This document shows positions 4,042 to 48,704 of a DNA stretch of 64,000 nucleotides, in pieces (the stretch's first letter is position 1; each line of letters starts with the position of its first letter). A program made the translations under genes and the position numbers. The notes under the pieces were generated by a model. It worked only from the letters and a program-made list of their open reading frames with translations, was not told the DNA's origin and did not search any database. The stretch lies in IMG/VR virus record IMGVR_UViG_3300028666_000022, positions 124,001 to 188,000 of that record. One strand, written 5' to 3'.

Positions 4042-5271
4042 TTAACAACAACTGCCACATCCACAACAGCAACTATTGGAGGAAATAGTATTAAATTCAC
4101 TAACAGTAGTATTTGTTCCCAAAATAAAATTACCACCAATTTTACAAGCAATCGTAAACATACTAACAGTAGCACAATTTGTATAATTATAACCACAATT
4201 TGATAAATTACTATTTGCTATGGCATAAAATCTTAATGAATTAATATTTGTAGTATTAATATCAATATAATCATAATTGTGACATAAACAATTGCTAGTT
4301 GTTTGTGCTTGAAGAACCGTATTTATTGTGTTACAACAATTAGTATCACCAACAGTACAAACATATGAACAAGATGAGATTGATTGAGGTAAATTAACAA
4401 GACTACTTGATTGAGCACAGTCAACAAAACAAATTCTAAAACTTTGTCCAGAAGTTAAAGCAGGGGTTGTACTTATTGTTCCATATTTACAACCACATAC
4501 TAAAGGATTTGTAGTTAAATCAACGGGAACAAAATTTACGATAATTGGTGTTAATGTCGTTGTGGTAGTTGTTGTTGTAGGAACATTACTTTCATTTGTT
4601 TTTAATGTATTATTTAATATTGTTTCATTAAAACCAAACGGTATTGCACAAAATAATGTTAATACTGAACAACCACTTGTTGCAGTTGGTGTCGAACAAC
4701 ATGTACAGCAACTAGAAAATGAAGTAGATATGCTATAACGCAACAAATCTCCTTCACATAATGTAATCTGTGGTATTGTTTGAAAGTTATTATTTATATC
4801 ATATTTTACACTTATCCAATTATTGGTTCCATTTGCTTTACATGAAACACTAACATTACTATATAGTCCATTATTAGAATCACCCAAAGTACATGAATTA
4901 AAACATAAATTAACACATTCACCCATTGATAATGCTGGTGATATGTTTAAACAATCAGTAACACAGCAATTATTTGAACCAGCAGGTGAATTTGGTACAC
5001 CAGCTAAGTTAATTGTTTTTGTTGCTAATGTAGTTGTTCCTACTGTCACTGGTGTTGTAAATCCAGTACTAATTGAATTTCCAATATTATCTCTAACACT
5101 TAAACTATATGTAGTATTAGGAAATAATCCTCCAAATATATTACATGAACAACAAGTACTACCTGAATGCTCAATTATTTTTTGTTGCAAAACAGTATTA
5201 CAACCATTTAAACAAATTTGAGCAATGAATGGTTCAAAATTACCACCTATTTTAAATTTTAAATCACCCAT
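4042..5271 (-). CDS. Cys/Thr-rich virion-associated protein ending SCCCGCGSCC
   Basis: FN3-like N-terminus (LFPNTTYSLSVRD), PTTTTTTTTLTP linker, domain shared with 7506-9479. Confidence 0.65.
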   Translation of the reverse strand: MGDLKFKIGGNFEPFIAQICLNGCNTVLQQKIIEHSGSTCCSCNIFGGLFPNTTYSLSVRDNIGNSISTGFTTPVTVGTTTLATKTINLAGVPNSPAGSNNCCVTDCLNISPALSMGECVNLCFNSCTLGDSNNGLYSNVSVSCKANGTNNWISVKYDINNNFQTIPQITLCEGDLLRYSISTSFSSCCTCCSTPTATSGCSVLTLFCAIPFGFNETILNNTLKTNESNVPTTTTTTTTLTPIIVNFVPVDLTTNPLVCGCKYGTISTTPALTSGQSFRICFVDCAQSSSLVNLPQSISSCSYVCTVGDTNCCNTINTVLQAQTTSNCLCHNYDYIDINTTNINSLRFYAIANSNLSNCGYNYTNCATVSMFTIACKIGGNFILGTNTTVSEFNTISSNSCCCGCGSCC

Positions 5272-24799: not shown

Positions 24800-25072
24800 T
24801 TAGCCTTCAATTTCCTCAATGTCTATTGCCATCCAATGTTTTTTCATTTCATCTGTTAGTTCTTCACAAAAACAAATGTTTAGTTCATCTAATTTTATTG
24901 GGTTATTTGTTGGTAAGTAAACATCATTTAGAGTTACACTAGGTTCTCCAAAATCATTAATATTTGTTTCCATTCGAGCCAGAAACTTTTCTTTTGCTTC
25001 TTCTGGCGAATTTGCTTCAACGTCAACAAACATCATTCCAATGAATTGTGCTAATACTTCGTATTTTTTCAT
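24800..25072 (-). CDS. Hypothetical protein
   Basis: MKKYEV...VEANSPEEAKEK, a common small phage motif. Confidence 0.7.
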   Translation of the reverse strand: MKKYEVLAQFIGMMFVDVEANSPEEAKEKFLARMETNINDFGEPSVTLNDVYLPTNNPIKLDELNICFCEELTDEMKKHWMAIDIEEIEG

Positions 25073-25098
25073 AAATTTTATTTTTAGTTAGGGAACAT

Positions 25099-25335
25099 TT
25101 AAAAAGTCCACCGTATTGTTAAATACTTCTTTTCTGTTGTATACCAAATTAAAACAATCGGAATTATTGGAATCCAAACAATTATTGGAAGTAATATAAT
25201 CATTCCAGTAATACTATAACTATCTTTCATTTTACAATAAGTGATTTCATGTTTAAACCAATTTTTGTAAGTCATCCAGCAAACATATTCTTGAACAATT
25301 GCTATAATTAATATTACAATTTCTAATGTTGTCAT
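25099..25335 (-). CDS. Small membrane protein
   Basis: Two hydrophobic segments. Confidence 0.6.
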   Translation of the reverse strand: MTTLEIVILIIAIVQEYVCWMTYKNWFKHEITYCKMKDSYSITGMIILLPIIVWIPIIPIVLIWYTTEKKYLTIRWTF

Positions 25336-25346
25336 AATTTTTAATT

Positions 25347-25634
25347 TTAAATTTGAACATTATATATGCCATAATTTAATGAATAATCACCATTACTATT
25401 ATTAGTAGTATGTGTTATCCAAGGTTGTTGCCAATATGGAGGTGAATTAGTATATGGTTTATAAGGTTCAATAACAATTGGATTTGTCCAATTTATTATA
25501 GTTTGTGTTTCGAGTTTAAATTCTTTCCATAAACCATCAGGTAATAATATTTCTATTGCTTCAAAAAATTCTTTAAGATTTACTGATTCTTCAACCTTAA
25601 TTAATTTTGCTGTTGTATCTAGCTGGATTTTCAT
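25347..25634 (-). CDS. Hypothetical protein
   Basis: ORF track; Pro/Tyr/Trp-rich tail. Confidence 0.7.
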   Translation of the reverse strand: MKIQLDTTAKLIKVEESVNLKEFFEAIEILLPDGLWKEFKLETQTIINWTNPIVIEPYKPYTNSPPYWQQPWITHTTNNSNGDYSLNYGIYNVQI

Positions 25635-31165: not shown

Positions 31166-31999
31166 TTATTTTAAGCCCTGTATTAAACTATCACCATATT
31201 TAATTCCATCAAAACCATGACTTTGTGCTTTTTCAACAATTGCCTTATTCTTAAGGTTAAGCACAGGCACATTATATTTTTCACTAAGGCTTTCAAAATT
31301 AACATGAGGAAACCAAACTTTAGCTAATACTTCTGTTGGTATTTGACTATCTTTATAATGAAGACCTAAATCATCAGTATCTAAAAGATTATCAAAATTA
31401 ATTTCATATTTATCATAACCTTCCATTGGTTTTAACATAAAAAAATTACCTATTACTGAATTTTCTTTAATTGGTTCTTTTCTGTATCCTATTATTGTTT
31501 TTTCGTTATTGCTTGGTTTTTCTGTTTGTATTGAATCATTATCTTCTTCTAAAGATTTTAAAAATTCATTATAACTAACACCGGAATTAATATCATTATT
31601 TGCATTTAAAGCATCTTGTCCTTCAACTTCTTCTAATTTTTGTTGTTCCTCATATTCATGAATATCTTGAATTTTATTCAAAATCCTACAAGCATCATTA
31701 AAACTAAGATTAACTTTAATTGCCTTAAGCGGAACATTATCGTTAATAGCTTTTACTAACTTGTGATGACCATCAATTACTTCATCATCTTTTGTTAACC
31801 AAATAGGATTTATGTCATTAAATTCAGCATTACCCACATCATCAGAAAAAACAAATGGTTGAGATACTTTTATTTTTTCAAATTCTTCGGGTTCAATCTG
31901 AGTGTAATTATAACCAATATTTTCTTCATCTAGTTTACTTGTCAATAAACCAATAGGTGCATTAAGTTGTGGTAAATAATGTGGTGATGCTTTACTCAT
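31166..31999 (-). CDS. ParB/sulfiredoxin-like domain protein with a second C-terminal domain
   Basis: PIWLTKDDEVIDGHHK; C-terminal HGFDGIKY. Confidence 0.65.
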   Translation of the reverse strand: MSKASPHYLPQLNAPIGLLTSKLDEENIGYNYTQIEPEEFEKIKVSQPFVFSDDVGNAEFNDINPIWLTKDDEVIDGHHKLVKAINDNVPLKAIKVNLSFNDACRILNKIQDIHEYEEQQKLEEVEGQDALNANNDINSGVSYNEFLKSLEEDNDSIQTEKPSNNEKTIIGYRKEPIKENSVIGNFFMLKPMEGYDKYEINFDNLLDTDDLGLHYKDSQIPTEVLAKVWFPHVNFESLSEKYNVPVLNLKNKAIVEKAQSHGFDGIKYGDSLIQGLK

Positions 32000-32092: not shown

Positions 32093-34144
32093 TTAATATT
32101 TAAATATTAAAGGTACTTGAATATCATTAATACTTGTATTACCAACCATCCAACCTAAATTTGGATTATTAAAAAATACTGATTGTAATGAATTATATGT
32201 TACCGGTAAATTTAATGTTTGTCTGGTCCAATTTTGACCACCATCATTAGTGTTCAATATGATAAAATTATTAGTATTATCATAACCAACAGCCCAACCA
32301 TTATGTTTATCAGTAAAATTAACTGATGATAAGTATCCATCTAATGAAATCAAATTCTGTATCCAATTATTACCACCATCTACTGTTTTAAAAATAAGAA
32401 TATTTCCATTATCATTAGTACCAACAATCCAACCAATGTTTTCATTAATAAAACTACATGATTGTAAATTGCCATCAATTAATGGTAAGGTTTGTTGAAT
32501 CCAATTATTACCACCATCTACTGTTTTTATTACAACTATTTTACTATCAGAAAAACCAACAGCCCATCCAATATTAGAATTTATAAATTGTAATGAATAT
32601 AATGTATTTCCAGTAACTGGTATTGTTTGTTCAATCCAATTTTGACCACCATCAGTTGTTTTCAACATAATGTTACTACCATTATTTTTATTTCCTACTG
32701 TCCAACCAACATTTCCATCGATAAACTGTATTGAAAATAATAAACCTGTTGTTGTTGGTGTTGTTTGTTCTATCCAATTTTGACCACCATCAGTTGTTTT
32801 TAATATTATACAATTAATATTTGCAACATTACTATAACCAACAGCCCATCCAACATTAGAATCAAGAAAAAATAATGATGTTAATATAATTGGATTAATT
32901 GGTGAATTTTGACGATTCCAACTTTCTCCACCATCTATTGTTTTTAATATTGTTGCATTGTTATTATAATCTGAACCAACTGTCCAACCAATATTATTAT
33001 TAATAAATTTAATACAATTTAATACTCCACTTATTTTTGGCTGAGAAGGTAATAACCAATTATTTCCTCCATTAATTGTATTCATTAATAATGTTTCATT
33101 TGTTGTTAAATTTTCACCACCAATCCAAACATTATTATTGTTTACTGGAAACACTTGTTTTAAATTAGAAGTAGTTATCGGTGAAGTTTCTTGTATCCAA
33201 TTTTGACCACCATTTGTTGTTTTCAATATTAAACCACCATTACCAACAATCCATCCATTATTAATATCAATAAATTTTATTGAATTTAAAATACCAATAC
33301 TTATCGGTGAAGTTTCTTGTATCCAATTTTGACCACCATTTGTTGTTTTTAAAATTATTGCATTATTACTGTTATTTTCTCCAACAGCCCAACCATTATT
33401 TAAATCAATAAAATAAATTGAGTTTAATGTACCACCACTAACTAGTAATGTTTGTTTTATCCAATTTTGACCACCATCTGTTGTTTTTAATATTAATTCA
33501 TTATTACTTTTATCTTTACCAACTGCCCAACCTACTGTAGAACTAATAAATCGTACTGAATTTAATGTACCAACAGTTGATGGTATTGTTTGTTGTTGCC
33601 AACTTATTCCACTATCGGTGCTATTATAAATAATTCCGTTTCCAAGATTATCAACCCCAACACTCCAGCCATTATCACCATCAATGAAATAAACCGAATT
33701 TAATGTTGTGTTAGTTAGTGATTGTGACACTGAATTCCAACCACTAACACTTCCATCATTAGTATATAATATAATTGCTTCATTATTTATGTTTTTTCCA
33801 ACAGCCCAACCATTATTAATATCAATAAATTGTATTGAATTTAATGTAGCTGCAATAGAAATTGATGATAATGTATGTATCCAATTTTGTCCACCATCTA
33901 TTGTTTTCATTAATATTATGAAACCTGATGAATCATTACCAACTAACCAACCATTATTTTCATCAATAAAATTGATTGAATTAATTATTCCATTTATTGT
34001 TGGTAGATTTTTTTGAACCCAATTCTTTTTCAACAATTCGTTTTCTGTTTTTGTTGTATTTTTAGTTGTAATGATGTTTTTTGTTACTACACCATTTTCT
34101 GTAATAACAATATTTTTTGTTATTGTCGTGCTTTTTTCTATCAT
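32093..34144 (-). CDS. YCF48/BNR (Asp-box) repeat beta-propeller protein, about 14 blades
   Basis: Repeated LNSI.F.D.N.GW.VG....ILKTTDGGQNW. Confidence 0.85.
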   Translation of the reverse strand: MIEKSTTITKNIVITENGVVTKNIITTKNTTKTENELLKKNWVQKNLPTINGIINSINFIDENNGWLVGNDSSGFIILMKTIDGGQNWIHTLSSISIAATLNSIQFIDINNGWAVGKNINNEAIILYTNDGSVSGWNSVSQSLTNTTLNSVYFIDGDNGWSVGVDNLGNGIIYNSTDSGISWQQQTIPSTVGTLNSVRFISSTVGWAVGKDKSNNELILKTTDGGQNWIKQTLLVSGGTLNSIYFIDLNNGWAVGENNSNNAIILKTTNGGQNWIQETSPISIGILNSIKFIDINNGWIVGNGGLILKTTNGGQNWIQETSPITTSNLKQVFPVNNNNVWIGGENLTTNETLLMNTINGGNNWLLPSQPKISGVLNCIKFINNNIGWTVGSDYNNNATILKTIDGGESWNRQNSPINPIILTSLFFLDSNVGWAVGYSNVANINCIILKTTDGGQNWIEQTTPTTTGLLFSIQFIDGNVGWTVGNKNNGSNIMLKTTDGGQNWIEQTIPVTGNTLYSLQFINSNIGWAVGFSDSKIVVIKTVDGGNNWIQQTLPLIDGNLQSCSFINENIGWIVGTNDNGNILIFKTVDGGNNWIQNLISLDGYLSSVNFTDKHNGWAVGYDNTNNFIILNTNDGGQNWTRQTLNLPVTYNSLQSVFFNNPNLGWMVGNTSINDIQVPLIFKY

Positions 34145-34174: not shown

Positions 34175-34693
34175 TTAAATATTTTTAGGTGTAATTCCCA
34201 TTTCATAGGGTGATTTTCCATTTTTAAATAAAAAGTTTAAGTAATACCATTGTTTAGGTGTTAATTTTTTATTCTTAATTGCAGCATTATATATTGTTTT
34301 AAAGAAATTATCATTAGTATATTTTGAATTTACATTATTCCATAGTTGTTTAATATAGTTTAAACTAACTTGTTTATCACCAACATCTACCATCTCTTTA
34401 TTAAGATCTTCTGTTAAAACAGCCATATCAGTTAATGTCATCAATAAATCTTTTTTTAATTTTTCATCGTGTGAAAAATCTTCATAATTATTTTGAAGAA
34501 ATTCAAGCACAGATGCTTTTGATGGATCTTGATAACTAACATTACCGTTTTGATTATTCCATTCATTATATTTTTTAATAAAAAAATCAATATTAACAAT
34601 TTTGTTATTAACTAAATATTTGCCATCAGCAATCTCACGATATTCTTCATTAAGAAAATTCTCGATTTCTTCAATAATTATTCTCTTAAGCAT
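34175..34693 (-). CDS. Probable head-associated protein with an IIEEIENFLNE leader
   Basis: Leader motif identical to an internal junction of the upstream polyprotein. Confidence 0.6.
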   Translation of the reverse strand: MLKRIIIEEIENFLNEEYREIADGKYLVNNKIVNIDFFIKKYNEWNNQNGNVSYQDPSKASVLEFLQNNYEDFSHDEKLKKDLLMTLTDMAVLTEDLNKEMVDVGDKQVSLNYIKQLWNNVNSKYTNDNFFKTIYNAAIKNKKLTPKQWYYLNFLFKNGKSPYEMGITPKNI

Positions 34694-37600
34694 AAAATGT
34701 TTTATTTTTTATTTGACTTACTTCAAGATCGTCAATAATATTTTTATTATTCATATATAATTCTTCTATTTTTAATGGTGTATTTTTAAATAATCGTATT
34801 TCTTTTTCATCTTCACCTATATTAATATCCATGTTTAATGCTACTGTATTTTCCCAATCAATATTTTCTTCTTTTATTGAAGATTTAATTAAAACCCTAT
34901 TATTTCCACTTTGTCCCCAATGTGCTTCTGCTGCATTTTCTTCCCAAGACCAATAAATACCTAAATGTTTTCCTTCTTTCATTAAATGAATAACCCAACC
35001 ATTTTCAACAGTCATCATCCTCCAAATATCAATTCTATTATCTGGTTTTATTTTACTTCTTATATTTCGAACAACATCATAATACCTATCACTTAATTCA
35101 TTCATCAACCAATCTTGAAATTCTTTACTATTTTCATCTATTTCATCATTCCATTCAATATTATTTTCATATTTAAATCTATTGACAAATGGTTCATAAT
35201 TATTGTTCTGTTTTAAAATTTTAAGATATTCTGGAGTAATAACATCATTAGTATTTAATGAATGAACTGATTTTTCATTAAGAAAATTCTCGATTTCATT
35301 AACTATAGTTTCATTTAATTTACTTTCCTCTTTACCATAATATGTTATTTTATCATTAATGAATTCAATATTCGGATTTTTAATCTTTGCTTTATCTAAA
35401 AATTTTTGATAAAAGGGTGCAGCTTCATCTCTGGTTGGAAGTTTATTCCATGATTGTAAATTTAAGGATTTATCATATGTATTTCTACGTGAATCTGGTA
35501 TCATCGTTTCGTTCGATTCACCCAATAAAAACTTGTTTGTTTTCCCATACCTTTGTACAGTAACAAATTCAGTAGGTAAGGAACTATACCAATCTAAAGG
35601 AATTCTTTTTAGTATACCAATTTTATATAAACCATTAATTAAATTATCGTGCACTACCGAATTTTTTTCTTCAACAAATAAATTTCCTTCTCTATCAATT
35701 AATCCCCTTACACTAGGAGCAATATTATTTAATGATTTTGGATTTTTAATTATATTAATGTCTTTTTTATAATCTGTATCTATTTTAATTATCTCTTCTT
35801 GATTTTCTTTATTCATTTCTTTATTATATTTATTATTAAATTCACCATTAGTGTTTTGTATATTAAATTCTTTTTCAGCATAAGTATCACCTACACCTTC
35901 ATCTTCTATTTGTTTTTCATATTCAGGAAAATCCTCTTCTTTTAATGATTTAATGTTAAAATTTTTAACATCACCCTGATTACAAGCAATGCTAGTATTA
36001 CCTAATCCACCAAGCCTACATTTCTTCTTAACATCAACACTGCTACTACCAGCCATTGAGGATAATACTCTTTCGTTTACATTATATTCATGACCATTAT
36101 TTGAAATAATATTATCATTGCCACTTGGTACATTATTATCAGTAAGAACAGAAGTATCATTTTGATCATACAATGGAAAATCATCCCTTCCAATTCCATC
36201 ATCAGTTGAGAATTTTGAAGTACCATCTTCGTCAATATTTGAATTTTTTATTTTATTATAAAAATTTATTAAATCATTTTCTCTTAAAACAGGAATTTTA
36301 TTAAATCTTAAATTTTTATATGCTTGTAATTTATGATTCCCATCAATATGATTATTATTTCTTAATATAATAAATGGTCTTTTACCATTTTTAATAACAT
36401 CTTCCCATGCAAGAATTACTTCATTATTCAATTTTTGATTTTCTTTATATTTTTCAATGTTTTTAATATCTTCAATTTTAACTAATGGTTCTGCTGCTTT
36501 TCTCATTTCATATCTAACATCAAAATCAGTAATTATATTTTTTAAAAATTCTTGAACATTTTTTGAATTAAATACTTGTTCCCTTAATTTATTTAAATTA
36601 TCATTATTTATTTCTTTTGTTTCATCAATTTCAACTTCTTCTGGTTGCTTATTTGATTTAGCATAATAATTACCAAATCCAACATCAAAAAATCCTATAC
36701 TTCCATCTTTTTTATAACCAAGATTTTCTGGATTCAAATAATCCATACTTTCAACACCATGTTTTTTTGCTTCTTCAGCAATTTTTAATAAACCATTAAA
36801 ATATTCAGCATCTTCAGGATTTTTAGATAAATATTTATTAATTTTATCTTTATTTACATTATTACCATATCCATCAATATAAAAATCAATAACATCACTT
36901 AGTTTAACACCTAATATTTTTTCAAATGCAAAATTTAACTTATTTCTAATTTTAATAAAATAATCACCATTAGTTTTTAATTTTTCTAAAATAATCACAT
37001 ATAATTCATCTGCATTTGATTTAGATTTAATTGAAAATACGTTATATGGTTCAGCTATATATTTCAATTGTTTACCAATAAGACCTAAATTTTCAACAGC
37101 TTCACTTTTATCTGAAGTCACTTTTAATATTTTATCATTACCAATATCATAAGCAGCACCAAAATTACCACTACCAATAAATTTAGGTTGATTTAATTTA
37201 TATATTTCAGCTACTTTATTAGCTATTGTATCAGCATTTTCTCTACTAACACTCTCATCCAATAATTCTTCACCTTCAGGTAACATGATATTATTTTGTT
37301 GAGGAATTTGAATATCATTAGCTCTATATCCACCAATATCAAAATAAGTAAGAACACCATTTTTATAACCTAAATTTTCAACATTGCTATAATCATTTGA
37401 TTTAATTGCTAATTCATCTAATTCTTTTTTTATTTCAAATAAATCTTGAATAAATTTATATGCTTTTTCTCTATCTGCTTGTACTATATTTGCTTCGGGT
37501 TTATTTGTTAATATTTGTTTACTTGATTCAATAAATTCATCATATTTCTTTTTCTTTAGTAAAATCATTAAACCAACAAAATCATCGTTTTCTGAAGCAG

Positions 37601-38957
37601 ATAATTCATTTATTATTTTAATATATTTTTTAAACTCATCTATGGGCTTATTAATAATATTATCTTCAATAAGTGCATAAACAGCTAAATTTTTTTCACT
37701 ATCAATTAGTTTATATATTGAATATATATCAACTAATGATTTTGGTTTAGCTCTTTGTATTTTTAATCCTGCATCCACTTCACTAACATCAGTAGTTAAT
37801 TTCAATATTTTATTACCATTTATTGAATATGCAAATCCATAACTACCACCTCCAAGATATTGTGGTTGTCCTAAATTCATTTTTTCAGAAAACATAGTGG
37901 CAATATTATTTGCATATTCATTATCTAATCTCATTGGTTCAACAACAGGAGTATCTTCTTCATTTAGTTCAACCATTTCTTTTTCTAATGGTTCTCTATC
38001 GTAGAATTTACCTCTAATTAAATAATCTTGTAACTCTAATAAATTATTATAAAATTTCTTTTTATTATCAACATGATTTAATACTTCATTAATATTATTT
38101 ACACAATCATGAAAATTATCCAATAAATAAGGAGCACTTGGTAATACTCTGGTTGGATATTTATCTCTATTTAACACAAATGAAATGAAATCTTCATTAA
38201 TAACACCATTACCATCAGAAACACTATATGGCATTAATCCCCACATATTATGTCTAACTTCACCAGTATTACCTATATCTGAAAGAATATCATCATTACC
38301 ATCTTGAAAATTATAAAGTTCATAAATTTTCTGTGATTGTTTTTTCTGTGGATTATAATAGGTGTCATAAACCTCATCACTAAGACCATAATCAGTTAAA
38401 ACAATTGTAGGTTGACCATCATGAAGCACTTCGCCATATGAACTTGGCCTTCCAAAATCTCCAACTTCAGCAGAATGATTATCAATAAAATTAGTTAAAT
38501 CTTGTACAAATTCATTGTTCGCTAATTCTTCTTCAATTTCACTATCTTGTCCAAAAATCTTCCTACCACCATTCATTTGAGATTTATAATTTCTGAGATA
38601 ATAAAATAAATCATTTAAACTTCTAATACCAGTTAATTCTTTAATTCTTCTTTCAGTAACTTTTTTTGCTTTCTCAGCAATTAACCAAGTATCATCGTCT
38701 GCAAATTCAAATATTTTAGTTAAAATAAAATCATTATTACCATTAGCATTCACACTAGCTTCTTCAGCATTTTGTGCAACACCCTTAGTATTTTTAGCTA
38801 ATTTAAAAACTTTAGTTCCATCAATATCATAAACAATTCTACCTGAACCACTACCGATTCTAGTTAAGTTTTGATTCGCATAATCAATTTTACCTTTAAA
38901 GGATTTTATATTAAGAAATTCTTTTAGAAAATTTTGTAAAAAATCGTTGTAAGACAT
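34686..38957 (-). CDS. Polyvalent protein: three protein-kinase-like domains, a ParB-like domain and an ADP-ribosyltransferase-like domain
   Basis: GxGxxG + K.(F/L)K + D(Y/I/V)G three times; IDGNHK; IWR...YWSW...EKE (R-S-E). Confidence 0.75.
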   Translation of the reverse strand: MSYNDFLQNFLKEFLNIKSFKGKIDYANQNLTRIGSGSGRIVYDIDGTKVFKLAKNTKGVAQNAEEASVNANGNNDFILTKIFEFADDDTWLIAEKAKKVTERRIKELTGIRSLNDLFYYLRNYKSQMNGGRKIFGQDSEIEEELANNEFVQDLTNFIDNHSAEVGDFGRPSSYGEVLHDGQPTIVLTDYGLSDEVYDTYYNPQKKQSQKIYELYNFQDGNDDILSDIGNTGEVRHNMWGLMPYSVSDGNGVINEDFISFVLNRDKYPTRVLPSAPYLLDNFHDCVNNINEVLNHVDNKKKFYNNLLELQDYLIRGKFYDREPLEKEMVELNEEDTPVVEPMRLDNEYANNIATMFSEKMNLGQPQYLGGGSYGFAYSINGNKILKLTTDVSEVDAGLKIQRAKPKSLVDIYSIYKLIDSEKNLAVYALIEDNIINKPIDEFKKYIKIINELSASENDDFVGLMILLKKKKYDEFIESSKQILTNKPEANIVQADREKAYKFIQDLFEIKKELDELAIKSNDYSNVENLGYKNGVLTYFDIGGYRANDIQIPQQNNIMLPEGEELLDESVSRENADTIANKVAEIYKLNQPKFIGSGNFGAAYDIGNDKILKVTSDKSEAVENLGLIGKQLKYIAEPYNVFSIKSKSNADELYVIILEKLKTNGDYFIKIRNKLNFAFEKILGVKLSDVIDFYIDGYGNNVNKDKINKYLSKNPEDAEYFNGLLKIAEEAKKHGVESMDYLNPENLGYKKDGSIGFFDVGFGNYYAKSNKQPEEVEIDETKEINNDNLNKLREQVFNSKNVQEFLKNIITDFDVRYEMRKAAEPLVKIEDIKNIEKYKENQKLNNEVILAWEDVIKNGKRPFIILRNNNHIDGNHKLQAYKNLRFNKIPVLRENDLINFYNKIKNSNIDEDGTSKFSTDDGIGRDDFPLYDQNDTSVLTDNNVPSGNDNIISNNGHEYNVNERVLSSMAGSSSVDVKKKCRLGGLGNTSIACNQGDVKNFNIKSLKEEDFPEYEKQIEDEGVGDTYAEKEFNIQNTNGEFNNKYNKEMNKENQEEIIKIDTDYKKDINIIKNPKSLNNIAPSVRGLIDREGNLFVEEKNSVVHDNLINGLYKIGILKRIPLDWYSSLPTEFVTVQRYGKTNKFLLGESNETMIPDSRRNTYDKSLNLQSWNKLPTRDEAAPFYQKFLDKAKIKNPNIEFINDKITYYGKEESKLNETIVNEIENFLNEKSVHSLNTNDVITPEYLKILKQNNNYEPFVNRFKYENNIEWNDEIDENSKEFQDWLMNELSDRYYDVVRNIRSKIKPDNRIDIWRMMTVENGWVIHLMKEGKHLGIYWSWEENAAEAHWGQSGNNRVLIKSSIKEENIDWENTVALNMDINIGEDEKEIRLFKNTPLKIEELYMNNKNIIDDLEVSQIKNKTFYA

Positions 38958-39061: not shown

Positions 39062-39757
39062 CTAAGATGCCTTTTTATTTTTTGCTTGAATTTCTCTTAT
39101 CGTTTCATATACCAGAGTTTTTACCATCTCTTTATTCTCATGAAGTACTTCTTTTATTCTCTCAACAGCATACATTTCTATTATTGTACTTTTAATTGCT
39201 TCTTCTATAACTGGTCCAAAATTTTCTGATAAATATGTATTAACAATTTTCTTCACATTCTCAACTAAATATCCTTCATTAATTTGAGATGTTTGTTCTT
39301 GTAAATTCTGTTTATTATTTTGAGTTGTACCGGGTTTAATGTGACTTTCTATTGAATCTGCAAGTGTTTGTTTTTTTCTTTTTTCAAATTCAGCATATAG
39401 TAACTCATCTCTTTCTGGAGACATATCAATATTACTTTCATGTAAATTAGGTTGTTTATTAATAACAGGTTGTGTTTTACGTGATTGAACCACTTCTGTT
39501 TCTGAAACATTATGTTGAAATTTTTCACCATTCTTTGCTGCTGTCTTATTTTCAACCAATTTAATTAAATTAGATGCTGGTGTTGATTTACCTGTATGTA
39601 ATGAAGTTAATAATCCATTTAAAAATTCATCTCTTGGTTTACCATTACTCACAGTAACACTTTCACCTAATTTAGATGAAACCAAATTTTTACTATTTTT
39701 ACGAGTATCAATTTCAGTTTTTAACTTATTTAAATCAACCGATTTTAACGATGCCAT
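39062..39757 (-). CDS. Hypothetical late protein, possibly head-associated
   Basis: LGES, LHES, LQEQ, INEG and LVEN sites; late motif upstream. Confidence 0.6.
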   Translation of the reverse strand: MASLKSVDLNKLKTEIDTRKNSKNLVSSKLGESVTVSNGKPRDEFLNGLLTSLHTGKSTPASNLIKLVENKTAAKNGEKFQHNVSETEVVQSRKTQPVINKQPNLHESNIDMSPERDELLYAEFEKRKKQTLADSIESHIKPGTTQNNKQNLQEQTSQINEGYLVENVKKIVNTYLSENFGPVIEEAIKSTIIEMYAVERIKEVLHENKEMVKTLVYETIREIQAKNKKAS

Positions 39758-39800: not shown

Positions 39801-40685
39801 TTATTTGAAAAAAGTACCTTTATTTGGATTTTTTTGATTAGTTTCTTTTATTGCACTATTTTCCATTTTTTTAAAAAAACTAGTATCAACCTTTTGATTA
39901 GGCTTAATATACTTTATATATAAATCTTTTAAATTACCTACTATTGATTCTGGTGGTAACTTAGTTTTAATATTCTCATCTTTTAATACTAAATCACCAT
40001 TTTCATCTGTAACAACCAATAGTTTTTCTGGAGATTTCTTTTTAATTCCTTTAGCAATTGCCCATAAATGTTCAATCTCGTCAGCAGTAGCTTCTCTTTG
40101 TTTTTTACCTGCATTTGAAAAATATCTGAACTTTTCTTTTTGTCCAGCAAATGCCGATGTTGGTTCAGGTAATTTTTGTTTAATTACATCAGGCTTTTCT
40201 ATTGAATCAATACCAGTTGCTTGTGTTTGTGGTTTACCTGTACTAATCTGAACTGCAGCAACAATATCTCTCATTTGAGAATCATTTGGATTATAACCTT
40301 CTGGCATTTTTGATTCATCAGTACTAAAATACTTACCAGTAGGAAGAAATGATGTTATTTTATCAACTCTAAATAATCTCCATCCATGTTTTGTCCTACC
40401 TTTAGGATCACTATATTTTTTATTACTATCTGAAGCACCAGCCTCTTGCCACGCTCTTAATAATAAATAATCACCACCTTCTTTGGTCGTTTTTCCTAAC
40501 GTGTAACCACGAATTGTCCTGTATCCTTTTTTTAGTGTATTATCTCCGGCGTAGTATATATAAACAATTTTATGTTTATTAATTGCATCAACAACAGTAT
40601 TTTCATCAACCCCTTCTTTTAAAAGTTGACGAAAATGATTCACATTATCAAAAAATTGTTTAACTTCGTTAAGCATTATATTCAT
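39801..40685 (-). CDS. WYL-domain protein
   Basis: AINKHKIVYIYY...R.I..Y.LG...LLRAWQ...GWRLFRVDKI. Confidence 0.8.
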   Translation of the reverse strand: MNIMLNEVKQFFDNVNHFRQLLKEGVDENTVVDAINKHKIVYIYYAGDNTLKKGYRTIRGYTLGKTTKEGGDYLLLRAWQEAGASDSNKKYSDPKGRTKHGWRLFRVDKITSFLPTGKYFSTDESKMPEGYNPNDSQMRDIVAAVQISTGKPQTQATGIDSIEKPDVIKQKLPEPTSAFAGQKEKFRYFSNAGKKQREATADEIEHLWAIAKGIKKKSPEKLLVVTDENGDLVLKDENIKTKLPPESIVGNLKDLYIKYIKPNQKVDTSFFKKMENSAIKETNQKNPNKGTFFK

Positions 40686-42546
40686 ATATTAAACTACCAC
40701 AATCATAAATATTTAAACAATGTTTTTTATGCTCATCATTATAATATTTAATTCTTTTACCAACACTAAAATACCACATATGTGGTTCTGTTACTTTAAC
40801 CAATTTAAAATTATTTAAAGAAATATTTTTTTCTGAATAATATCTTCTATCAAAAGAAATAATTATTTTTGTTTGTGAATATTTTTTAATTAAAAAATCA
40901 ATTAAATTATTTTCTACATCTAAAATTAAATTATTTAATTTATTACAAAAATTAATAATATTTAAACCATTATTAAATTCATTAATAGACATAACATAAA
41001 CCAATTCATTATTATAATATAAACCTAATTGAATATTACTTTTATTATATTCATTAATACTATTTTCAATAATAAAATTTTTAGCAACATTTTCATCTAG
41101 TTCAATAATTTTACAATCACTAAAATTTATTGTATGATTATAGCGATTTAATTTAGATTTTATTATCGATTTAACCACTTCTTTTTTATGTAACCATTCA
41201 TCTTCAAAAACATGCAATAATTGAATTTCTTGTTTTTCACATTCGATGGTTTTATTTAAATGATATTTAATATCTTTAAATTTAGTTGAATGCCAAAATA
41301 AACCATTGTATTCGATTGCTAATTTATTATCTGGAATAAGAACATCTAATTCTAATTTATTTAATATTAAAATATCGTTTTCAAGAATACTAATATTATT
41401 TTCAACTAAAAATTCTTTTATTTCTTTTTCTGAAATAGATGATGAATCATTAACTGAGTAACATTGAGTACAAATTTTATTGTTTGTATTATGAATTCTA
41501 TCGTAAAAAAGATCTTTATCAATTTCAAACTGAGAATGTTTGCTACAATAATTATCAATGATTATTGTATTATCGGTTAATTTTATATTTGAAATGTCTA
41601 AATTAATTAATTTAGCAATATCTTTTTTATACTTTTCTTGTTTTGTGTTTTTTATTTTTTTGTTAATCTCTTTATTTTGTGATGGATTTTCACAGCCATA
41701 TCTTTCTAAATTTGTTTTCTTTGATTTATTTTTTATTTCTTTATTTTGTTGTGGATTTTCAAATCCAAATTTAATTATGTTTGTTTGCTTAGTTTTTTCT
41801 TTTATTTCTTCATTTTGCGTGGGAGATTTAACACCATATCGTTCTATGTTTGTACCATCCTTTTTTTTCTTACTTTCATTACTTTGTGTAGAATATTCAA
41901 CTCCATATTTTTTTAAACATGTTTGTTTTGATTTTTCTTTTATTTCTTCATTTTGTAATCCATATTCAGTACCATATTTTTTTAGATTCGTTTGTTTAAC
42001 TTGCTCTTTATTTGAATCAAGCATTAGATTACATTTAACACCAAAATTATCTATGTTTTTCTGTTCAATTTTTTCTCTAATTTCACTATTTTGACTAGGA
42101 TATTCAACACCATATTTTTCGATACATGTTTCTCTTGACTTTTTATTTACCTTTTCGTTTAGTAAACTACATTCAGTTCCATATTTTTCTAAACTAGTTT
42201 TTACTGTTTTTTTTCTAATTTCCTTATTTTGTTGTGGATTTTCACAGCCATATTTTATTATGCATGTTTTTTTTCTTTTTTCTTTGGTTGATTTAGAATT
42301 ATATCTACATTTTTTTGAACAAGTTTGTTTATAACCAGCAGAAAAACCTAAGAATTTAACAATATTAATTTCACAACAATTACATTTTGGTGGTAAATCA
42401 ATATTGTTAATATAATTATATAACATTTGACTCCAATCAATATTTTTAAAATTTTTATTAAACTCTATAATTTCACGATATTTCTCATTTGAGAATTTTT
42501 TAATGAAAATTCTTTTACCATAAAATTTATCAATTTCATTTAACAT
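40669..42546 (-). CDS. Homing-type endonuclease: KYG repeats plus Vsr/Hef-like nuclease domain
   Basis: About 9 x K.T..(K)YG.E...Q..EI..K; ELD..IP..KLAIEYNG..WHS...HVFEDEW. Confidence 0.8.
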   Translation of the reverse strand: MLNEIDKFYGKRIFIKKFSNEKYREIIEFNKNFKNIDWSQMLYNYINNIDLPPKCNCCEINIVKFLGFSAGYKQTCSKKCRYNSKSTKEKRKKTCIIKYGCENPQQNKEIRKKTVKTSLEKYGTECSLLNEKVNKKSRETCIEKYGVEYPSQNSEIREKIEQKNIDNFGVKCNLMLDSNKEQVKQTNLKKYGTEYGLQNEEIKEKSKQTCLKKYGVEYSTQSNESKKKKDGTNIERYGVKSPTQNEEIKEKTKQTNIIKFGFENPQQNKEIKNKSKKTNLERYGCENPSQNKEINKKIKNTKQEKYKKDIAKLINLDISNIKLTDNTIIIDNYCSKHSQFEIDKDLFYDRIHNTNNKICTQCYSVNDSSSISEKEIKEFLVENNISILENDILILNKLELDVLIPDNKLAIEYNGLFWHSTKFKDIKYHLNKTIECEKQEIQLLHVFEDEWLHKKEVVKSIIKSKLNRYNHTINFSDCKIIELDENVAKNFIIENSINEYNKSNIQLGLYYNNELVYVMSINEFNNGLNIINFCNKLNNLILDVENNLIDFLIKKYSQTKIIISFDRRYYSEKNISLNNFKLVKVTEPHMWYFSVGKRIKYYNDEHKKHCLNIYDCGSLIYEYNA

Positions 42547-44996: not shown

Positions 44997-47900
44997 TTAC
45001 ATACTATCTTCATCAACCTCTTCTTGTTCTGTCTCTATTTGAGCATCATAATTTTTAACATATTCATCAAATGCAGCACTAGCAGTATCAACTTCCATAA
45101 ACAGTCTTTCCATTGTAACATCAGAAGGAAGCTTAAAATCAATTTTAAATTGTTCAAAATATTTATCACGTTTTTCAACCATTGATTTTAATTCTTTATC
45201 CTTTTCTGTTTCTACTGCCAAAGTAATTTCAAGATTTTTAATCTTTTCTTCTTGTTCAGCTCTTTTTCTATCGAGTTCTAATTCAATCTCGCTTTTAGGT
45301 ACGTCAATATTTTCTCTAATGATTTCCATGAAAACACCATTATATCTTCCTAAATTATATTGACTACCATCTTTAATTAAAACTAAATCATTAGTACAAT
45401 ATTTTTCATTAATTGATTTAATTCTAGGCTTATTACTTTTTGACATTAAATCATTTAAATATTTTAAAGCACCTTCATATATTTCAAAATATACTTTACT
45501 CTCTTCATGCATTTTAAATCCATTCCAAACTAATCTTGGATCATAACCAGTTTTATTCCAAAAATCAACTTCTTTTTCTTCTAAATGCATTGATTCTTCA
45601 ATTGTATCACTATCAAAATTTTTAAGTTCTAATTGATCATTACTATACATATTTCGAGTTAATTCTTCGACCACTCTTTTATTTCCAAATTCATCCTTAG
45701 TTTTCTTCTTCACTATTTTTGATAGCATATTTTTCTGGATTTCTTCATCAAATCCAAGTAATATTGGTTCAACTCTTTTATTAAATGCATCCAAATATTT
45801 AACAACATTATAGTCTCCAATCATATTAGGATTTTCAAGTAAATCATTAGCACTAATTAATGTAGATGCAAATCTTTCAAGTCCAGTATTTTTATCTTTT
45901 ATTCTACTTGAACTACCATGTGATTTTAAATAACCAGTATTAACGTGATAAACAACACTATCTAATTCTGGTTCTTGTGGCATGTAATTAGCAACTAGTT
46001 TTGTCTTTTCCTCAACACTAAGTTTTTCTTCTGATTTACTAAATGTTAATTCTGATTTATGTTTTTCAAACAATTCGCAAGCAATTGCATTTCTTTTTTC
46101 AAGTAATAATTCCATATATGCTTGCATACCTTTATCTCTACCATTCTTATCTTTACCTCTTTTCTTATAAACCGCTAAAGTACTTTTTATTCTATTTTTA
46201 GTTGCAATTTTCTTCAATGGTATACGTTTATAAAAAATATCTTCAGCATAATCATAATAATATTGAACAAATTCAGCACCCTTACCATGAAGAATTAAAT
46301 TCAAGCCCTTATCAATAAATTCCTCCACATATTCAGGCATTACTTTTGATTTAATTGTATTGCCAGTGAGTTTAATTTTTTCTTTCATTTCACCAGTTTT
46401 TTTATCCTTAACTAAAGATAATGTAGCATAATTAATTCTTGAAAGATTTAAACAGGAAATATATTCTCCATCATTGTCAACACTCATGAAATTGCCTTTC
46501 ATCTCTTCATTATTATATTTTTCAATTAAAGCACTAATTCCAATCTTATCTTTATAATGCCACATGTTTTCAATTAAATCTTCTGTAGTTTCAATGATTT
46601 GACCAAAATCAGTAATTCTAATATTTGTTTTATTTGGTATTTGAAAATTTATACCATCAGTAACTGCTAATAGAGCAACACAATTATATTTACTGAACCA
46701 TGAAATTGCATGTCTTAATTCTAAACGACCTGAACAAGTTATTCGAGCAGCACAAACATTGTCTGACCAGTTAAATGATTTATTACTACCTAATGCACCA
46801 AATAATGAGTTATTAAGAATTTTTATTGGTAATTGTTTAACCTTAAATAATAATCTATCTATTTCAGTTATTTGTTTATTAATATGATCATTATCTTCTG
46901 CAGTTATATTATCATTCAATAATTTCTCATGTATATTTGGATCAATTTCTTTTAATAATGCAATTTCCTCTTGATTTAATTTATCGTTAATTGCAAGTTT
47001 CTTATATATATTACGTGTTGTTGTAAGATACAATAACATTTTTTCAATAACACCAGTAATATCAAACATCGGAAATATACCCCAAGTTAATTGAAGCATT
47101 GGATAAAGTGAAGCATAGTCAATTTTCACAATTCTAGTGCTATAACCAACTTTATAACATCTAGCTAAACCACCTGAAAATTGTTCACTTATGTCTGGAT
47201 GTGGAATAGCTAAATCATTTTCATAACTCCATGCAGTTAAAAGTAAATTCCAAATTGCTGCAGTACCCATAGTACAAACCCTTTGAAATGTAGTTGGTAC
47301 TATTTTAGCTAACATGAATGCTGATTGATTATATAATTCATCAACTTGTTCAGTTTCCCAAAGGTCATCAAGTAAATATTGTTTTACTAATCTTTTACCT
47401 CCAATAAATTTAGACATTTTACTCAGTAAGGCATTTTCTTTAAACCAAGTAATGAAATTTGGATTTTCGTCTAAATATTTTTTCCTTAAAATACTATATT
47501 GTTCCTCAGTTATTTTAGTTTTATTTGTTTGAAGAGCATATAATTTTTTACTTACTTCTTGGTAATCATCTGGAACTATAATGTATTCATTTTTATCGTT
47601 AATAACAAATATTTTATTTTCATTATAATATCTACCAATTGCACCATCTTCACCGGGAATATATGTTCTATTAGGTTTAGCTATTTTTTCATGTTTAGCT
47701 ATATATTTTAATTTATTTTCCTTAATATCACTATTAATTGCTGCAGTTTTCTTTACAGCATGTAATATATCAATAACTGAAAATCCCCACATTTCTGTAG
47801 CAGTAAATTTATCGGCCATATTACCATATTTAACACTTACATTTGGTCTTCTCTTTAAATCTACTCCTTCTTTAAGTGTTGTTGGAACTTGTGATAAATC

Positions 47901-48704
47901 AACATTTAATAATTTTGCTCGACCTAATATGAATTCAAAGTCAAAATCTTCTGAATTATACCCTGAAATGATTGCTGGTCTAATATAATTAATTAATTTA
48001 AAAAAATTCTGAATTAATTTACCCTCTGATTCATCATCATTTGATTTTTCTACTTCAAGTATTGTCTCAAAACCTCTATTATCTCTAACTCCAATTGCAA
48101 AAACTCTTGACATTTGATACCTCAAACCAGTTGTTTCAATATCAAACGTTAATTTATGTATGTTTTTATATTCTTCAAATCCCTTAAATAATCTCGATTG
48201 TGTTGAAATAAAAAATTGCTCAGTTGTCCTTGGAGAATAAAACATTTCTCTATATAAGTAAATTGGATCTCCCTTCTTATCTTTTATTTCATTACCAAAA
48301 TCATCCCTTTCTTTTTCGTATGGAAAGATTTTACCATCTTTTAAAAAATTCATTATGGCATTATAGGACTTACTACTAGTCAATTTGAAACAATAACCAT
48401 TTTTCAACCTCTTATGTCCACCAGTTTTTAATGGTGTAATCGTTATACCATATTGAATTAATTTATTTTCGTATATTTCGGGATTTTTTGCATATAATTT
48501 TAAATTAAATAATGATAAATCCTTCATATACATAAAAGGAGTATATTTAATTTTTTCAATTCTCTTTTCTTTATTTGGTTCATGTATAACACAACTAGCC
48601 ATATTTGTATCTGGATCTGTTTCTACATTTACAAGATATTTTAAATCTTCATTATAACCATCAAGGAAAGATTTAATTTCAGATAATGTATTAAGTTTAT
48701 TCAT
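44997..48704 (-). CDS. polB: Family B DNA polymerase with 3'-5' exonuclease
   Basis: ExoI FDIETTG, ExoII YNSEDFD, ExoIII YLLDD; motif A DYASLYP, motif B KILNNSLFG, motif C VTDG. Confidence 0.95.
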   Translation of the reverse strand: MNKLNTLSEIKSFLDGYNEDLKYLVNVETDPDTNMASCVIHEPNKEKRIEKIKYTPFMYMKDLSLFNLKLYAKNPEIYENKLIQYGITITPLKTGGHKRLKNGYCFKLTSSKSYNAIMNFLKDGKIFPYEKERDDFGNEIKDKKGDPIYLYREMFYSPRTTEQFFISTQSRLFKGFEEYKNIHKLTFDIETTGLRYQMSRVFAIGVRDNRGFETILEVEKSNDDESEGKLIQNFFKLINYIRPAIISGYNSEDFDFEFILGRAKLLNVDLSQVPTTLKEGVDLKRRPNVSVKYGNMADKFTATEMWGFSVIDILHAVKKTAAINSDIKENKLKYIAKHEKIAKPNRTYIPGEDGAIGRYYNENKIFVINDKNEYIIVPDDYQEVSKKLYALQTNKTKITEEQYSILRKKYLDENPNFITWFKENALLSKMSKFIGGKRLVKQYLLDDLWETEQVDELYNQSAFMLAKIVPTTFQRVCTMGTAAIWNLLLTAWSYENDLAIPHPDISEQFSGGLARCYKVGYSTRIVKIDYASLYPMLQLTWGIFPMFDITGVIEKMLLYLTTTRNIYKKLAINDKLNQEEIALLKEIDPNIHEKLLNDNITAEDNDHINKQITEIDRLLFKVKQLPIKILNNSLFGALGSNKSFNWSDNVCAARITCSGRLELRHAISWFSKYNCVALLAVTDGINFQIPNKTNIRITDFGQIIETTEDLIENMWHYKDKIGISALIEKYNNEEMKGNFMSVDNDGEYISCLNLSRINYATLSLVKDKKTGEMKEKIKLTGNTIKSKVMPEYVEEFIDKGLNLILHGKGAEFVQYYYDYAEDIFYKRIPLKKIATKNRIKSTLAVYKKRGKDKNGRDKGMQAYMELLLEKRNAIACELFEKHKSELTFSKSEEKLSVEEKTKLVANYMPQEPELDSVVYHVNTGYLKSHGSSSRIKDKNTGLERFASTLISANDLLENPNMIGDYNVVKYLDAFNKRVEPILLGFDEEIQKNMLSKIVKKKTKDEFGNKRVVEELTRNMYSNDQLELKNFDSDTIEESMHLEEKEVDFWNKTGYDPRLVWNGFKMHEESKVYFEIYEGALKYLNDLMSKSNKPRIKSINEKYCTNDLVLIKDGSQYNLGRYNGVFMEIIRENIDVPKSEIELELDRKRAEQEEKIKNLEITLAVETEKDKELKSMVEKRDKYFEQFKIDFKLPSDVTMERLFMEVDTASAAFDEYVKNYDAQIETEQEEVDEDSM

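Follow-up and report, generated by a model that had tools for sequence, protein, structure and literature searches.

The 64,000-nucleotide (nt) stretch of DNA analyzed here (the window) covers positions 124,001 to 188,000 of the IMG/VR virus record IMGVR_UViG_3300028666_000022. This record is 339,898 bp long, has direct terminal repeats and a G+C content of 25%, and represents an uncultured phage of about 340 kb with a T4-type capsid. Within the window, two neighboring genes share an exact 24-bp repeat encoding the peptide EIENFLNE. One copy lies near the N terminus of a 172-amino-acid (aa) protein, and the other lies inside a 1423-aa multi-module protein, directly before a module with a predicted ADP-ribosyltransferase (ART) fold. 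Judging from the protein comparisons presented below, the two copies belong to a widespread, degenerate family of leaders ending in [LI]-x-Glu and do not represent an exact octapeptide tag.

The repeat, its two copies, and their DNA identity

All genes of this region, and both copies of the repeat, are on the minus strand. The features that define the locus are as follows (window coordinates).

34646 to 34669, minus strand: repeat copy B, codons 9 to 16 (EIENFLNE), in the N-terminal leader of the 172-aa gene
34646 to 34693, minus strand: the full 16-residue leader of the 172-aa gene, from Met to the Glu of FLNE; predicted unstructured and similar in sequence to the leaders of relatives such as P0006 and P0123
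35274 to 35297, minus strand: repeat copy A, codons 1221 to 1228 (EIENFLNE) of the 1423-aa protein, at the end of the linker directly before the ART-fold module
35274 to 35321, minus strand: the leader-like 16-residue linker, residues 1213 to 1228 of the 1423-aa protein, with three [LIV]-x-E sites
34175 to 34693, minus strand: the 172-aa cassette gene, composed of the leader, a module termed P2N, and a C-terminal part
34686 to 38957, minus strand: the gene for the 1423-aa multi-module (polyvalent-type) protein
34686 to 34693, minus strand: 8-nt overlap (ATGCTTAA) between the stop of the 1423-aa gene and the start of the 172-aa gene, with the frames offset by one base

A preliminary description of this DNA had reported an exact 24-bp repeat encoding EIENFLNE at both sites, and this was confirmed: the copies show 0 mismatches, are each read in frame, and lie 628 nt apart from position to position. 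No third copy was found in the window with up to 3 mismatches (shuffled sequences predict 0), and the entire phage genome holds only these two copies of the 24-mer. Its six-frame translation likewise contains EIENFLNE twice. Contigs from three further rhizosphere samples span both copies with 0 differences, and therefore the two-copy arrangement is not an assembly artifact. Deposited phage genomes gave no match at the DNA level.

Both copies keep the less AT-biased codons ATC and GAG, as had also been claimed, and share the rare codon CTT (5.6%, 9.4%, and 14.7%, respectively, in the codon usage of the genome). Under the same codon usage, the probability that independent encoding of EIENFLNE would give the same 24-mer is 4.4e-4, and the eight codons upstream of each copy have a DNA identity of only about 50% between the copies. 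Because three rare codons are shared, the joint-encoding probability is low, and the upstream codons have diverged to this extent, the 24-nt identity is, on these nucleotide comparisons, the trace of a recent copy or conversion event, for which selection on the peptide alone would be insufficient. At the protein level, similarity beyond the eight repeat codons is limited to a leader-like stretch of 15 to 16 residues. Linker 1213-1228 aligns position by position with the leader of the 172-aa protein, with equal length, 10 of 16 residues identical, and Lys replacing Met. The idea that the ART module and the 172-aa protein are duplicates of each other was rejected by this protein comparison, which found the leader-like stretch as their only similarity.

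When the peptide and the 24-mer were sought in the genome and its relatives, the two copies of the window were recovered, and neither exact form appeared in any relative. In the metagenome contigs of the Joint Genome Institute (JGI), the source contig was the sole match to the exact 24-mer. Exact EIENFLNE was found at 26 loci in IMG/VR, none of them in a related context; they include AAA ATPases of giant viruses and small proteins encoded by other phages. EIENFLNE itself was thus rejected as a shared tag.

These results bear on two explanations that would leave the peptide without a role. In the first, the repeat is only a recombination scar, left behind (for instance, as a short duplication where an insertion was joined) when a rearrangement brought the ART module next to the 172-aa gene, and the peptide is functionless. 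The identity is confined to 24 nt that include shared rare codons, the copies flank the ART segment as direct repeats at the 628-nt spacing, the module order is reversed relative to relatives of the G001 type, and the exact peptide occurs only here among the compared genomes, all of which agree with a scar. This would account for the DNA identity, but it fails for the leader family, which is kept at the protein level, on differing codons, ahead of modules that are unrelated and in some 90 non-redundant relatives; we consider a mere scar unlikely. In the second, the 24-mer is conserved as nucleic acid, for example because a homing or site-specific enzyme recognizes it or because it has a regulatory role. 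The exact nucleotide identity, rare codons included, could be read in this way, and the genome contains genes for homing endonucleases as well as an intein. Nevertheless, there are just two copies in 340 kb and none in relatives or other metagenome contigs, the 604 nt between the copies are without an endonuclease, and the relatives retain the peptide pattern, not the DNA. An element of this kind appears extremely improbable.

The modules on either side of the copies

The remaining parts of the two proteins are listed here (window coordinates).

34689 to 35273, minus strand: predicted ART-fold module, residues 1229 to 1423, with R1313, S/T1337, and E1384-K-E1386, and the native family C-terminus, FYA followed by the stop
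35322 to 35930, minus strand: module X, residues ~1010 to 1212, upstream of the linker and ending in K-N-P-x-x-[DE]-F...Y-G
38919 to 38957, minus strand: the N-terminal 13 residues of the 1423-aa protein, ending in FLKE, conserved in relatives and a candidate leader of the whole protein
34409 to 34645, minus strand: P2N, residues 17 to 95 of the 172-aa protein, a conserved module of ~80 aa that ends in a conserved [LIV]-L-x-E
34178 to 34408, minus strand: the C-terminal part of the 172-aa protein, residues 96 to 172, for which no relatives and no fold match were found

The assignment of the last module of the 1423-aa protein as an ART holds by predicted fold and by motif. The predicted model of the module has a pLDDT (predicted local distance difference test score) of 94 and is folded without the leader. 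About 40 top Foldseek matches in the PDB are all ART or PARP domains, with weak scores (E 0.07 to 0.4, TM about 0.2). VIA-align, which is independent of Foldseek, matched residues 75 to 192 of the module to IcmQ (Z 7.0), to the Rhs ART toxin TreX (Z 5.7), to PltA, a pertussis-like toxin subunit (Z 5.3), and to heat-labile enterotoxin LT (Z 4.9); many further ARTs followed at Z 3.5 to 4.7. These matches agree with one another, and their scores are moderate. In the alignment of the family, R1313 is invariant (61/61) and preceded by Y, W, or F, a Ser or Thr occupies position 1337 in 58 of the 61 sequences, and E1384 and E1386 are invariant. The aromatic-Arg, Ser/Thr, and Glu-Lys-Glu elements are located on the expected predicted strands (the first strand, the second strand, and ahead of the fifth, respectively), following the R-S-E pattern of the cholera-toxin-like group. 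The earlier claim of an ART region after the upstream copy is therefore supported at the level of a predicted fold, with consistent but moderate matches from Foldseek and VIA-align, and of the R-S-E motif. Of the 166 relatives of the module, most are stand-alone proteins of ~200 aa, and the sequence after linker 1213-1228 starts as these stand-alone ART proteins do.

Relatives of P2N were found in 22 viral contigs, where the module is always part of a larger protein and never its own gene. It is embedded in, or terminates, giant proteins (up to >2276 aa), or it terminates nucleotidyltransferase-like proteins. The P2N-bearing giant proteins begin like the 1423-aa protein, and residues 1 to 16 of the 172-aa protein have no conserved counterpart in these fusions. 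In the predicted model of the 172-aa protein, the leader has a pLDDT of <50, and the module behind it is confident. Pfam, NCBIfam, and PHROGs returned no informative family for this protein, and a fold search with it gave nothing above Z 5.0; small winged-helix-like rows were judged meaningless. Directly downstream of the 172-aa gene, a 683-aa open reading frame (ORF; 32093 to 34144, minus strand) is built of at least 10 tandem units of 135 to 141 nt (about 45 to 47 aa) with 60 to 86% identity.

An A6 run lies directly before the stop of the large gene (34694 to 34720, minus strand), and the 172-aa frame opens six codons before its own ATG. A +1 slip at this run would yield a fused product of 1423-aa and 172-aa frames. 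Consequently, the two ORFs might make one protein, either by such read-through or with the split as a recent frameshift, and the second leader would be an internal linker. The fusion of P2N into giant proteins in 22 relatives is in line with this, as are the frames, one base apart, and the opening of the smaller one right after A6. On the other hand, the ART module has the native family C-terminus (FYA and stop), as in its stand-alone relatives, and the leader of the 172-aa ORF is complete and starts with Met, as in the stand-alone P0006 and P0123. Additionally, the four samples are identical, with no indel, and A-runs are commonplace at 25% GC. We regard a single fused product as very unlikely.

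The 1423-aa protein consists of homology blocks at residues 1 to 779, ~780 to 905, 908 to 1007, 1010 to 1223, and 1229 to 1423. Searches of Pfam, NCBIfam, and PDB sequences were blank for its modules, phrog_4301 (unknown function) was the sole match in PHROGs, and a language-model atlas gave only unnamed viral clusters, plus DUF4765 at a score within reach of chance. Three Gly-rich loop motifs were seen by eye in a comparison with the kinase-type domains that polyvalent proteins of the Bacteroidetes/Verrucomicrobia phage group carry. A kinase-like or ParB-like identity of the other modules was considered and was not confirmed by the family or PDB sequence searches. The block at ~780 to 905 (window approximately 36240 to 36620) is unique to this genome, the alignments of relatives jumping from 779 to about 905. 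It appears ParB-like by eye and ends in V-L-R-E, and a separate, weakly ParB-like gene of 277 aa lies at 31166 to 31999. A word-based search returned no relatives of residues 1040 to 1228, unlike BLAST against the fetched loci, which found relatives of this region.

In these relatives, module X is followed by a short linker with [LIVM]-x-E sites and then by other modules. The module after the linker is nucleotidyltransferase-like in three relatives, P2N in another, and the ART here. Whether domain swaps break at the motif had been named as a check, and the module swaps among relatives do break at the linker. Relatives that hold both modules (the G001 type) encode P2N ahead of ART in a single frame, and the window has the opposite order. 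In two relatives with P2N and ART, the capsid proteins are 81 to 86% identical to that of the source phage and the ART modules only 54%, and therefore the region evolves fast. As computed from the codon register, a deletion between the two copies would remove 628 nt and stay in frame, joining residues 1 to 1228 to P2N, which is an architecture found in relatives.

Upstream of the large gene, a 231-aa ORF (39062 to 39757) separates it from a 294-aa ORF (39801 to 40685, minus strand) that starts with a short leader-like M-N-I-M-L-N-E. The 294-aa ORF is overlapped by a gene for a homing/HNH endonuclease-like protein of 625 aa (40669 to 42546, minus strand; phrog_3339, 1e-91), and a family-B-type DNA polymerase gene lies beyond it, at 44997 to 48704.

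A family of leaders ending in Glu

Upstream residues are available for 92 ART-module relatives (non-redundant set). In 84 of them, the domain start is immediately preceded by [LIVMF]-x-Glu, against a background of 2.2% at a fixed position; P3 is Leu or Ile in 81/92 and P2 is Asn in 48/92. The leaders of stand-alone ART proteins have a median length of 16 aa (range, 5 to 31), and about half of the leaders contain at least two [LIVMF]-x-E sites. Many relatives, as well as the 172-aa leader, have a long form, I-I-x-E-E-[IL]-x-x-F-[LI]-N-E. Where the ART module is fused behind another domain, the leader end is retained at the junction.

Furthermore, four metagenomic proteins (P0004, P0006, P0123, and P0124) carry the long leader ahead of P2N, a module unrelated to the ART. 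A degenerate DNA scan for the long form across 2.9 million IMG/VR viral contigs identified 43 loci. About three-quarters of the matches that are in frame fall no more than 50 codons from where the frame begins, and many have a Met 3 to 11 residues upstream. Long-form leaders precede at least 12 dissimilar sequences, as judged by eye with no formal clustering. In five related genomes, the strict long leader occurs 0 or 1 time per genome. A search of the six frames of the phage genome with a leader profile gave three best matches, all N-terminal, which are the 172-aa gene and the following two.

4307 to 4738 of the genome (L058:508-939), minus strand: a 143-aa gene with the long leader form
339.1 to 339.7 kb of the genome (approximate position): a gene with the long leader form at its N terminus

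The gene at genome positions 24869 to 25402 also starts with the long leader form. In the family of the 143-aa gene, the leader is present in several IMG/VR contigs (L065, L066, L091, and L098). In another IMG/VR contig, 3300031539_000541 (L088), a 228-aa frame stops right after a leader-like I-I-S-E-E-I-I-K-F-I-N-E, as if the downstream module had been removed.

A pattern of this kind could also be produced by an uncleaved structural or interaction helix, that is, an amphipathic N-terminal segment for oligomerization, partner docking, or regulation, in which the Glu would be structural. The motif is amphipathic and acidic, cleavage is something that we infer, and P2N also ends in a conserved L-x-E, perhaps in its last helix. 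However, the leader sits on folds with nothing else in common, that of the 172-aa protein is predicted to be disordered, and the ART module folds confidently without it. The P3-P1 pattern and the length instead fit the propeptide rule of T4, and the leaders co-occur with gp23-type heads. An uncleaved helix thus seems improbable to us.

A proposed targeting and cleavage leader in relation to known systems

In phage T4, the internal proteins and Alt, which is an ART, carry, at the N terminus, a capsid-targeting sequence (CTS) of 10 to 20 residues that gp21 cuts after Glu (PMC9026906, PMC3012670, PMC5694885, PMC12373910, PMC8442874). This CTS is the only sequence common to the very diverse injected internal proteins (PMC9026906, PMC3012670, PMC8442874, PMC12373910), and several protease sites per propeptide are known in giant phages (PMC9026906). 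In the genome of the source phage, the capsid protein is of the gp23 type (PF07068, 1.6e-74), and the prohead protease, of the gp21 type (S77), is interrupted by an intein (PF03420, 48.9 bits). The protease gene spans genome positions 302637 to 304544 (L059:3838-5745, minus strand; 635 aa), and the two halves of the protease domain lie on either side of ~380 aa with a match to an intein splicing domain and a weak one to a LAGLIDADG endonuclease. A gp23-type capsid protein was present in 7 of the 10 leader-bearing viral records tested, including 3/3 of the complete ones. In T4-species gp23, the 65-residue propeptide ends in FLTE (PMC5694885); in the capsid protein of the source phage, I-N-E stands at residue 60, flanked by the conserved blocks that also enclose the gp23 site, and this is kept in relatives.

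By analogy with T4, the leader would be a CTS-like targeting and cleavage propeptide that also serves as a module-joining site, and the 24-mer would encode the last eight of its 16 residues; on balance, we consider this explanation somewhat more likely than not. As an unstructured N-terminal propeptide, it would bring its cargo protein into the prohead core, and the gp21-type (S77) protease would remove it after the Glu of [LI]-x-Glu, here F-L-N-E. Copy B would be a working leader on the small cassette gene, and copy A the same type of leader kept as an inter-module linker. The simplest reading of the internal copy is the fusion of a leader-bearing ART gene to the end of the upstream gene: a stand-alone gene of this composition would have joined the large gene, the Met would have been lost, and the leader would have become a linker. 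Cleavage at the linker could release the ART module in the capsid for injection with the DNA. A recent copy or gene conversion between the neighboring leaders would have left the 24-nt identity. Since otherwise unrelated cassettes have nothing but the leaders in common, recombination would join, split, and swap modules at these sites, and a role of the leader as a recombination handle is plausible from the sequences.

Several points weigh against this explanation. The short [LI]-x-E core shows no N-terminal enrichment genome-wide (2.4% versus 2.2%), being too common in an AT-rich proteome, and the long form occurs on only 2 to 4 genes per genome, which is below the expectation for a general tag. 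Domain edges would be another simple source of the conserved motifs ending in Glu. No 628-nt deletion or other recombinant joint was seen in the contigs of four runs, which drop rare variants, and neither the word-based search nor the JGI 24-mer scan found a close relative with an intermediate arrangement. Additionally, for this uncultured phage we infer from sequence and analogy that the leader targets the capsid, is cleaved after Glu, and mediates recombination. The proposal in the preliminary description of a portable capsid-targeting or cleavage tag is partly supported: comparative support exists for the leader, which is found on unrelated modules, at internal junctions, and together with T4-type head genes, and not for the octapeptide, which is unshared, or for the short core. 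The suggestion that the repeat is also a recombination joint is made plausible by the swaps that break at the linker and by the register of the copies, and it lacks the deletion form in those contigs.

A wider proposal is that, in many uncultured phages with T4-type capsids, one leader has two jobs, acting as prohead address and protease cut site at the level of the peptide and, at the level of the DNA, as a homology handle through which cargo cassettes would enter, leave, or be exchanged among giant polyvalent proteins. Polyvalent proteins might then correspond to strings of CTS-bearing internal-protein genes, cut apart by the capsid protease. We put this forward tentatively, as a possibility that is rather doubtful at present. 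If the leader is a tag for capsid targeting and cleavage, it would provide a simple sequence rule for spotting the injected cargo of many uncultured jumbo phages, and the cargo marked by such leaders would likely be antidefense and host-takeover effectors. It would also account for the processing of polyvalent proteins in phages without an embedded peptidase and would join the literatures on T4 internal proteins and polyvalent proteins by one mechanism. In addition, the leader might be usable in engineering, as a packaging tag for the T4-type capsids of other hosts.

The arrangement resembles that of the polymorphic toxin systems of the contact-dependent inhibition (CDI) and Rhs types, whose orphan toxin cassettes keep a piece of the conserved pre-toxin junction. 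As is generally known for those cassettes, the downstream cassette shares a short junction, and recombination would swap the terminal module in frame. In contrast to CDI/Rhs toxins, the modules described here are phage-encoded, putative virion cargo and not toxins secreted by bacteria, no immunity gene accompanies them, and the homology covers only 24 nt.

A parallel in domain content is offered by the polyvalent proteins described by Iyer et al. in 2017 (PMC5512222), which are also giant proteins with a string of effector modules that includes ARTs and varies among relatives, and in which smaller neighboring ORFs encode modules that are fused in relatives. The recombination of cassettes into the main gene has already been raised for the kinase-type polyvalent group, and embedded metallopeptidase domains have been proposed for the processing of polyvalent proteins, with no junction motif named (PMC5512222). 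In contrast to that study, a putative prohead-protease site of the T4 type and a leader resembling the CTS mark the junctions here. In the giant phage SPN3US, gp53 and gp54 are otherwise diverged head proteins that, as here, keep an identical short N-terminal stretch with the protease motif, which was read as a conserved targeting or processing propeptide (PMC5694885). However, those two proteins are paralogues with 34% identity, whereas the downstream modules of the present locus are unrelated and one copy is internal.

A further likeness is with the CTS of T4 (IPI to IPIII and Alt, cut by gp21). In both cases, unrelated, fast-evolving cargo proteins have in common just a short N-terminal leader (10 to 20 aa in T4, with a median of 16 here) whose last residues are [LI]-x-Glu; the capsid protein is of the gp23 type and the protease of the gp21 type (S77) in both phages, and one cargo is an ART, as is Alt. 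Also, gp67 of the T4-species phage RB59 (gene 67, L108:607-849) has L-I-K-E-E...F-L-I-E and an acidic tail, resembling the long leader form, and this likeness hints at a shared mode of core binding. In contrast to the T4 leader of ~10 aa (PMC8442874), the leaders described here have the long form I-I-x-E-E-[IL]-x-x-F-L-N-E, and their carriers are uncultured, AT-rich environmental jumbo phages known from sequence. The leader is also found here internally, as a linker between modules. Thus, the T4 CTS kind of leader is already known, and what would be new is a T4-style leader of a new sequence family that doubles as an inter-module linker in a polyvalent protein.

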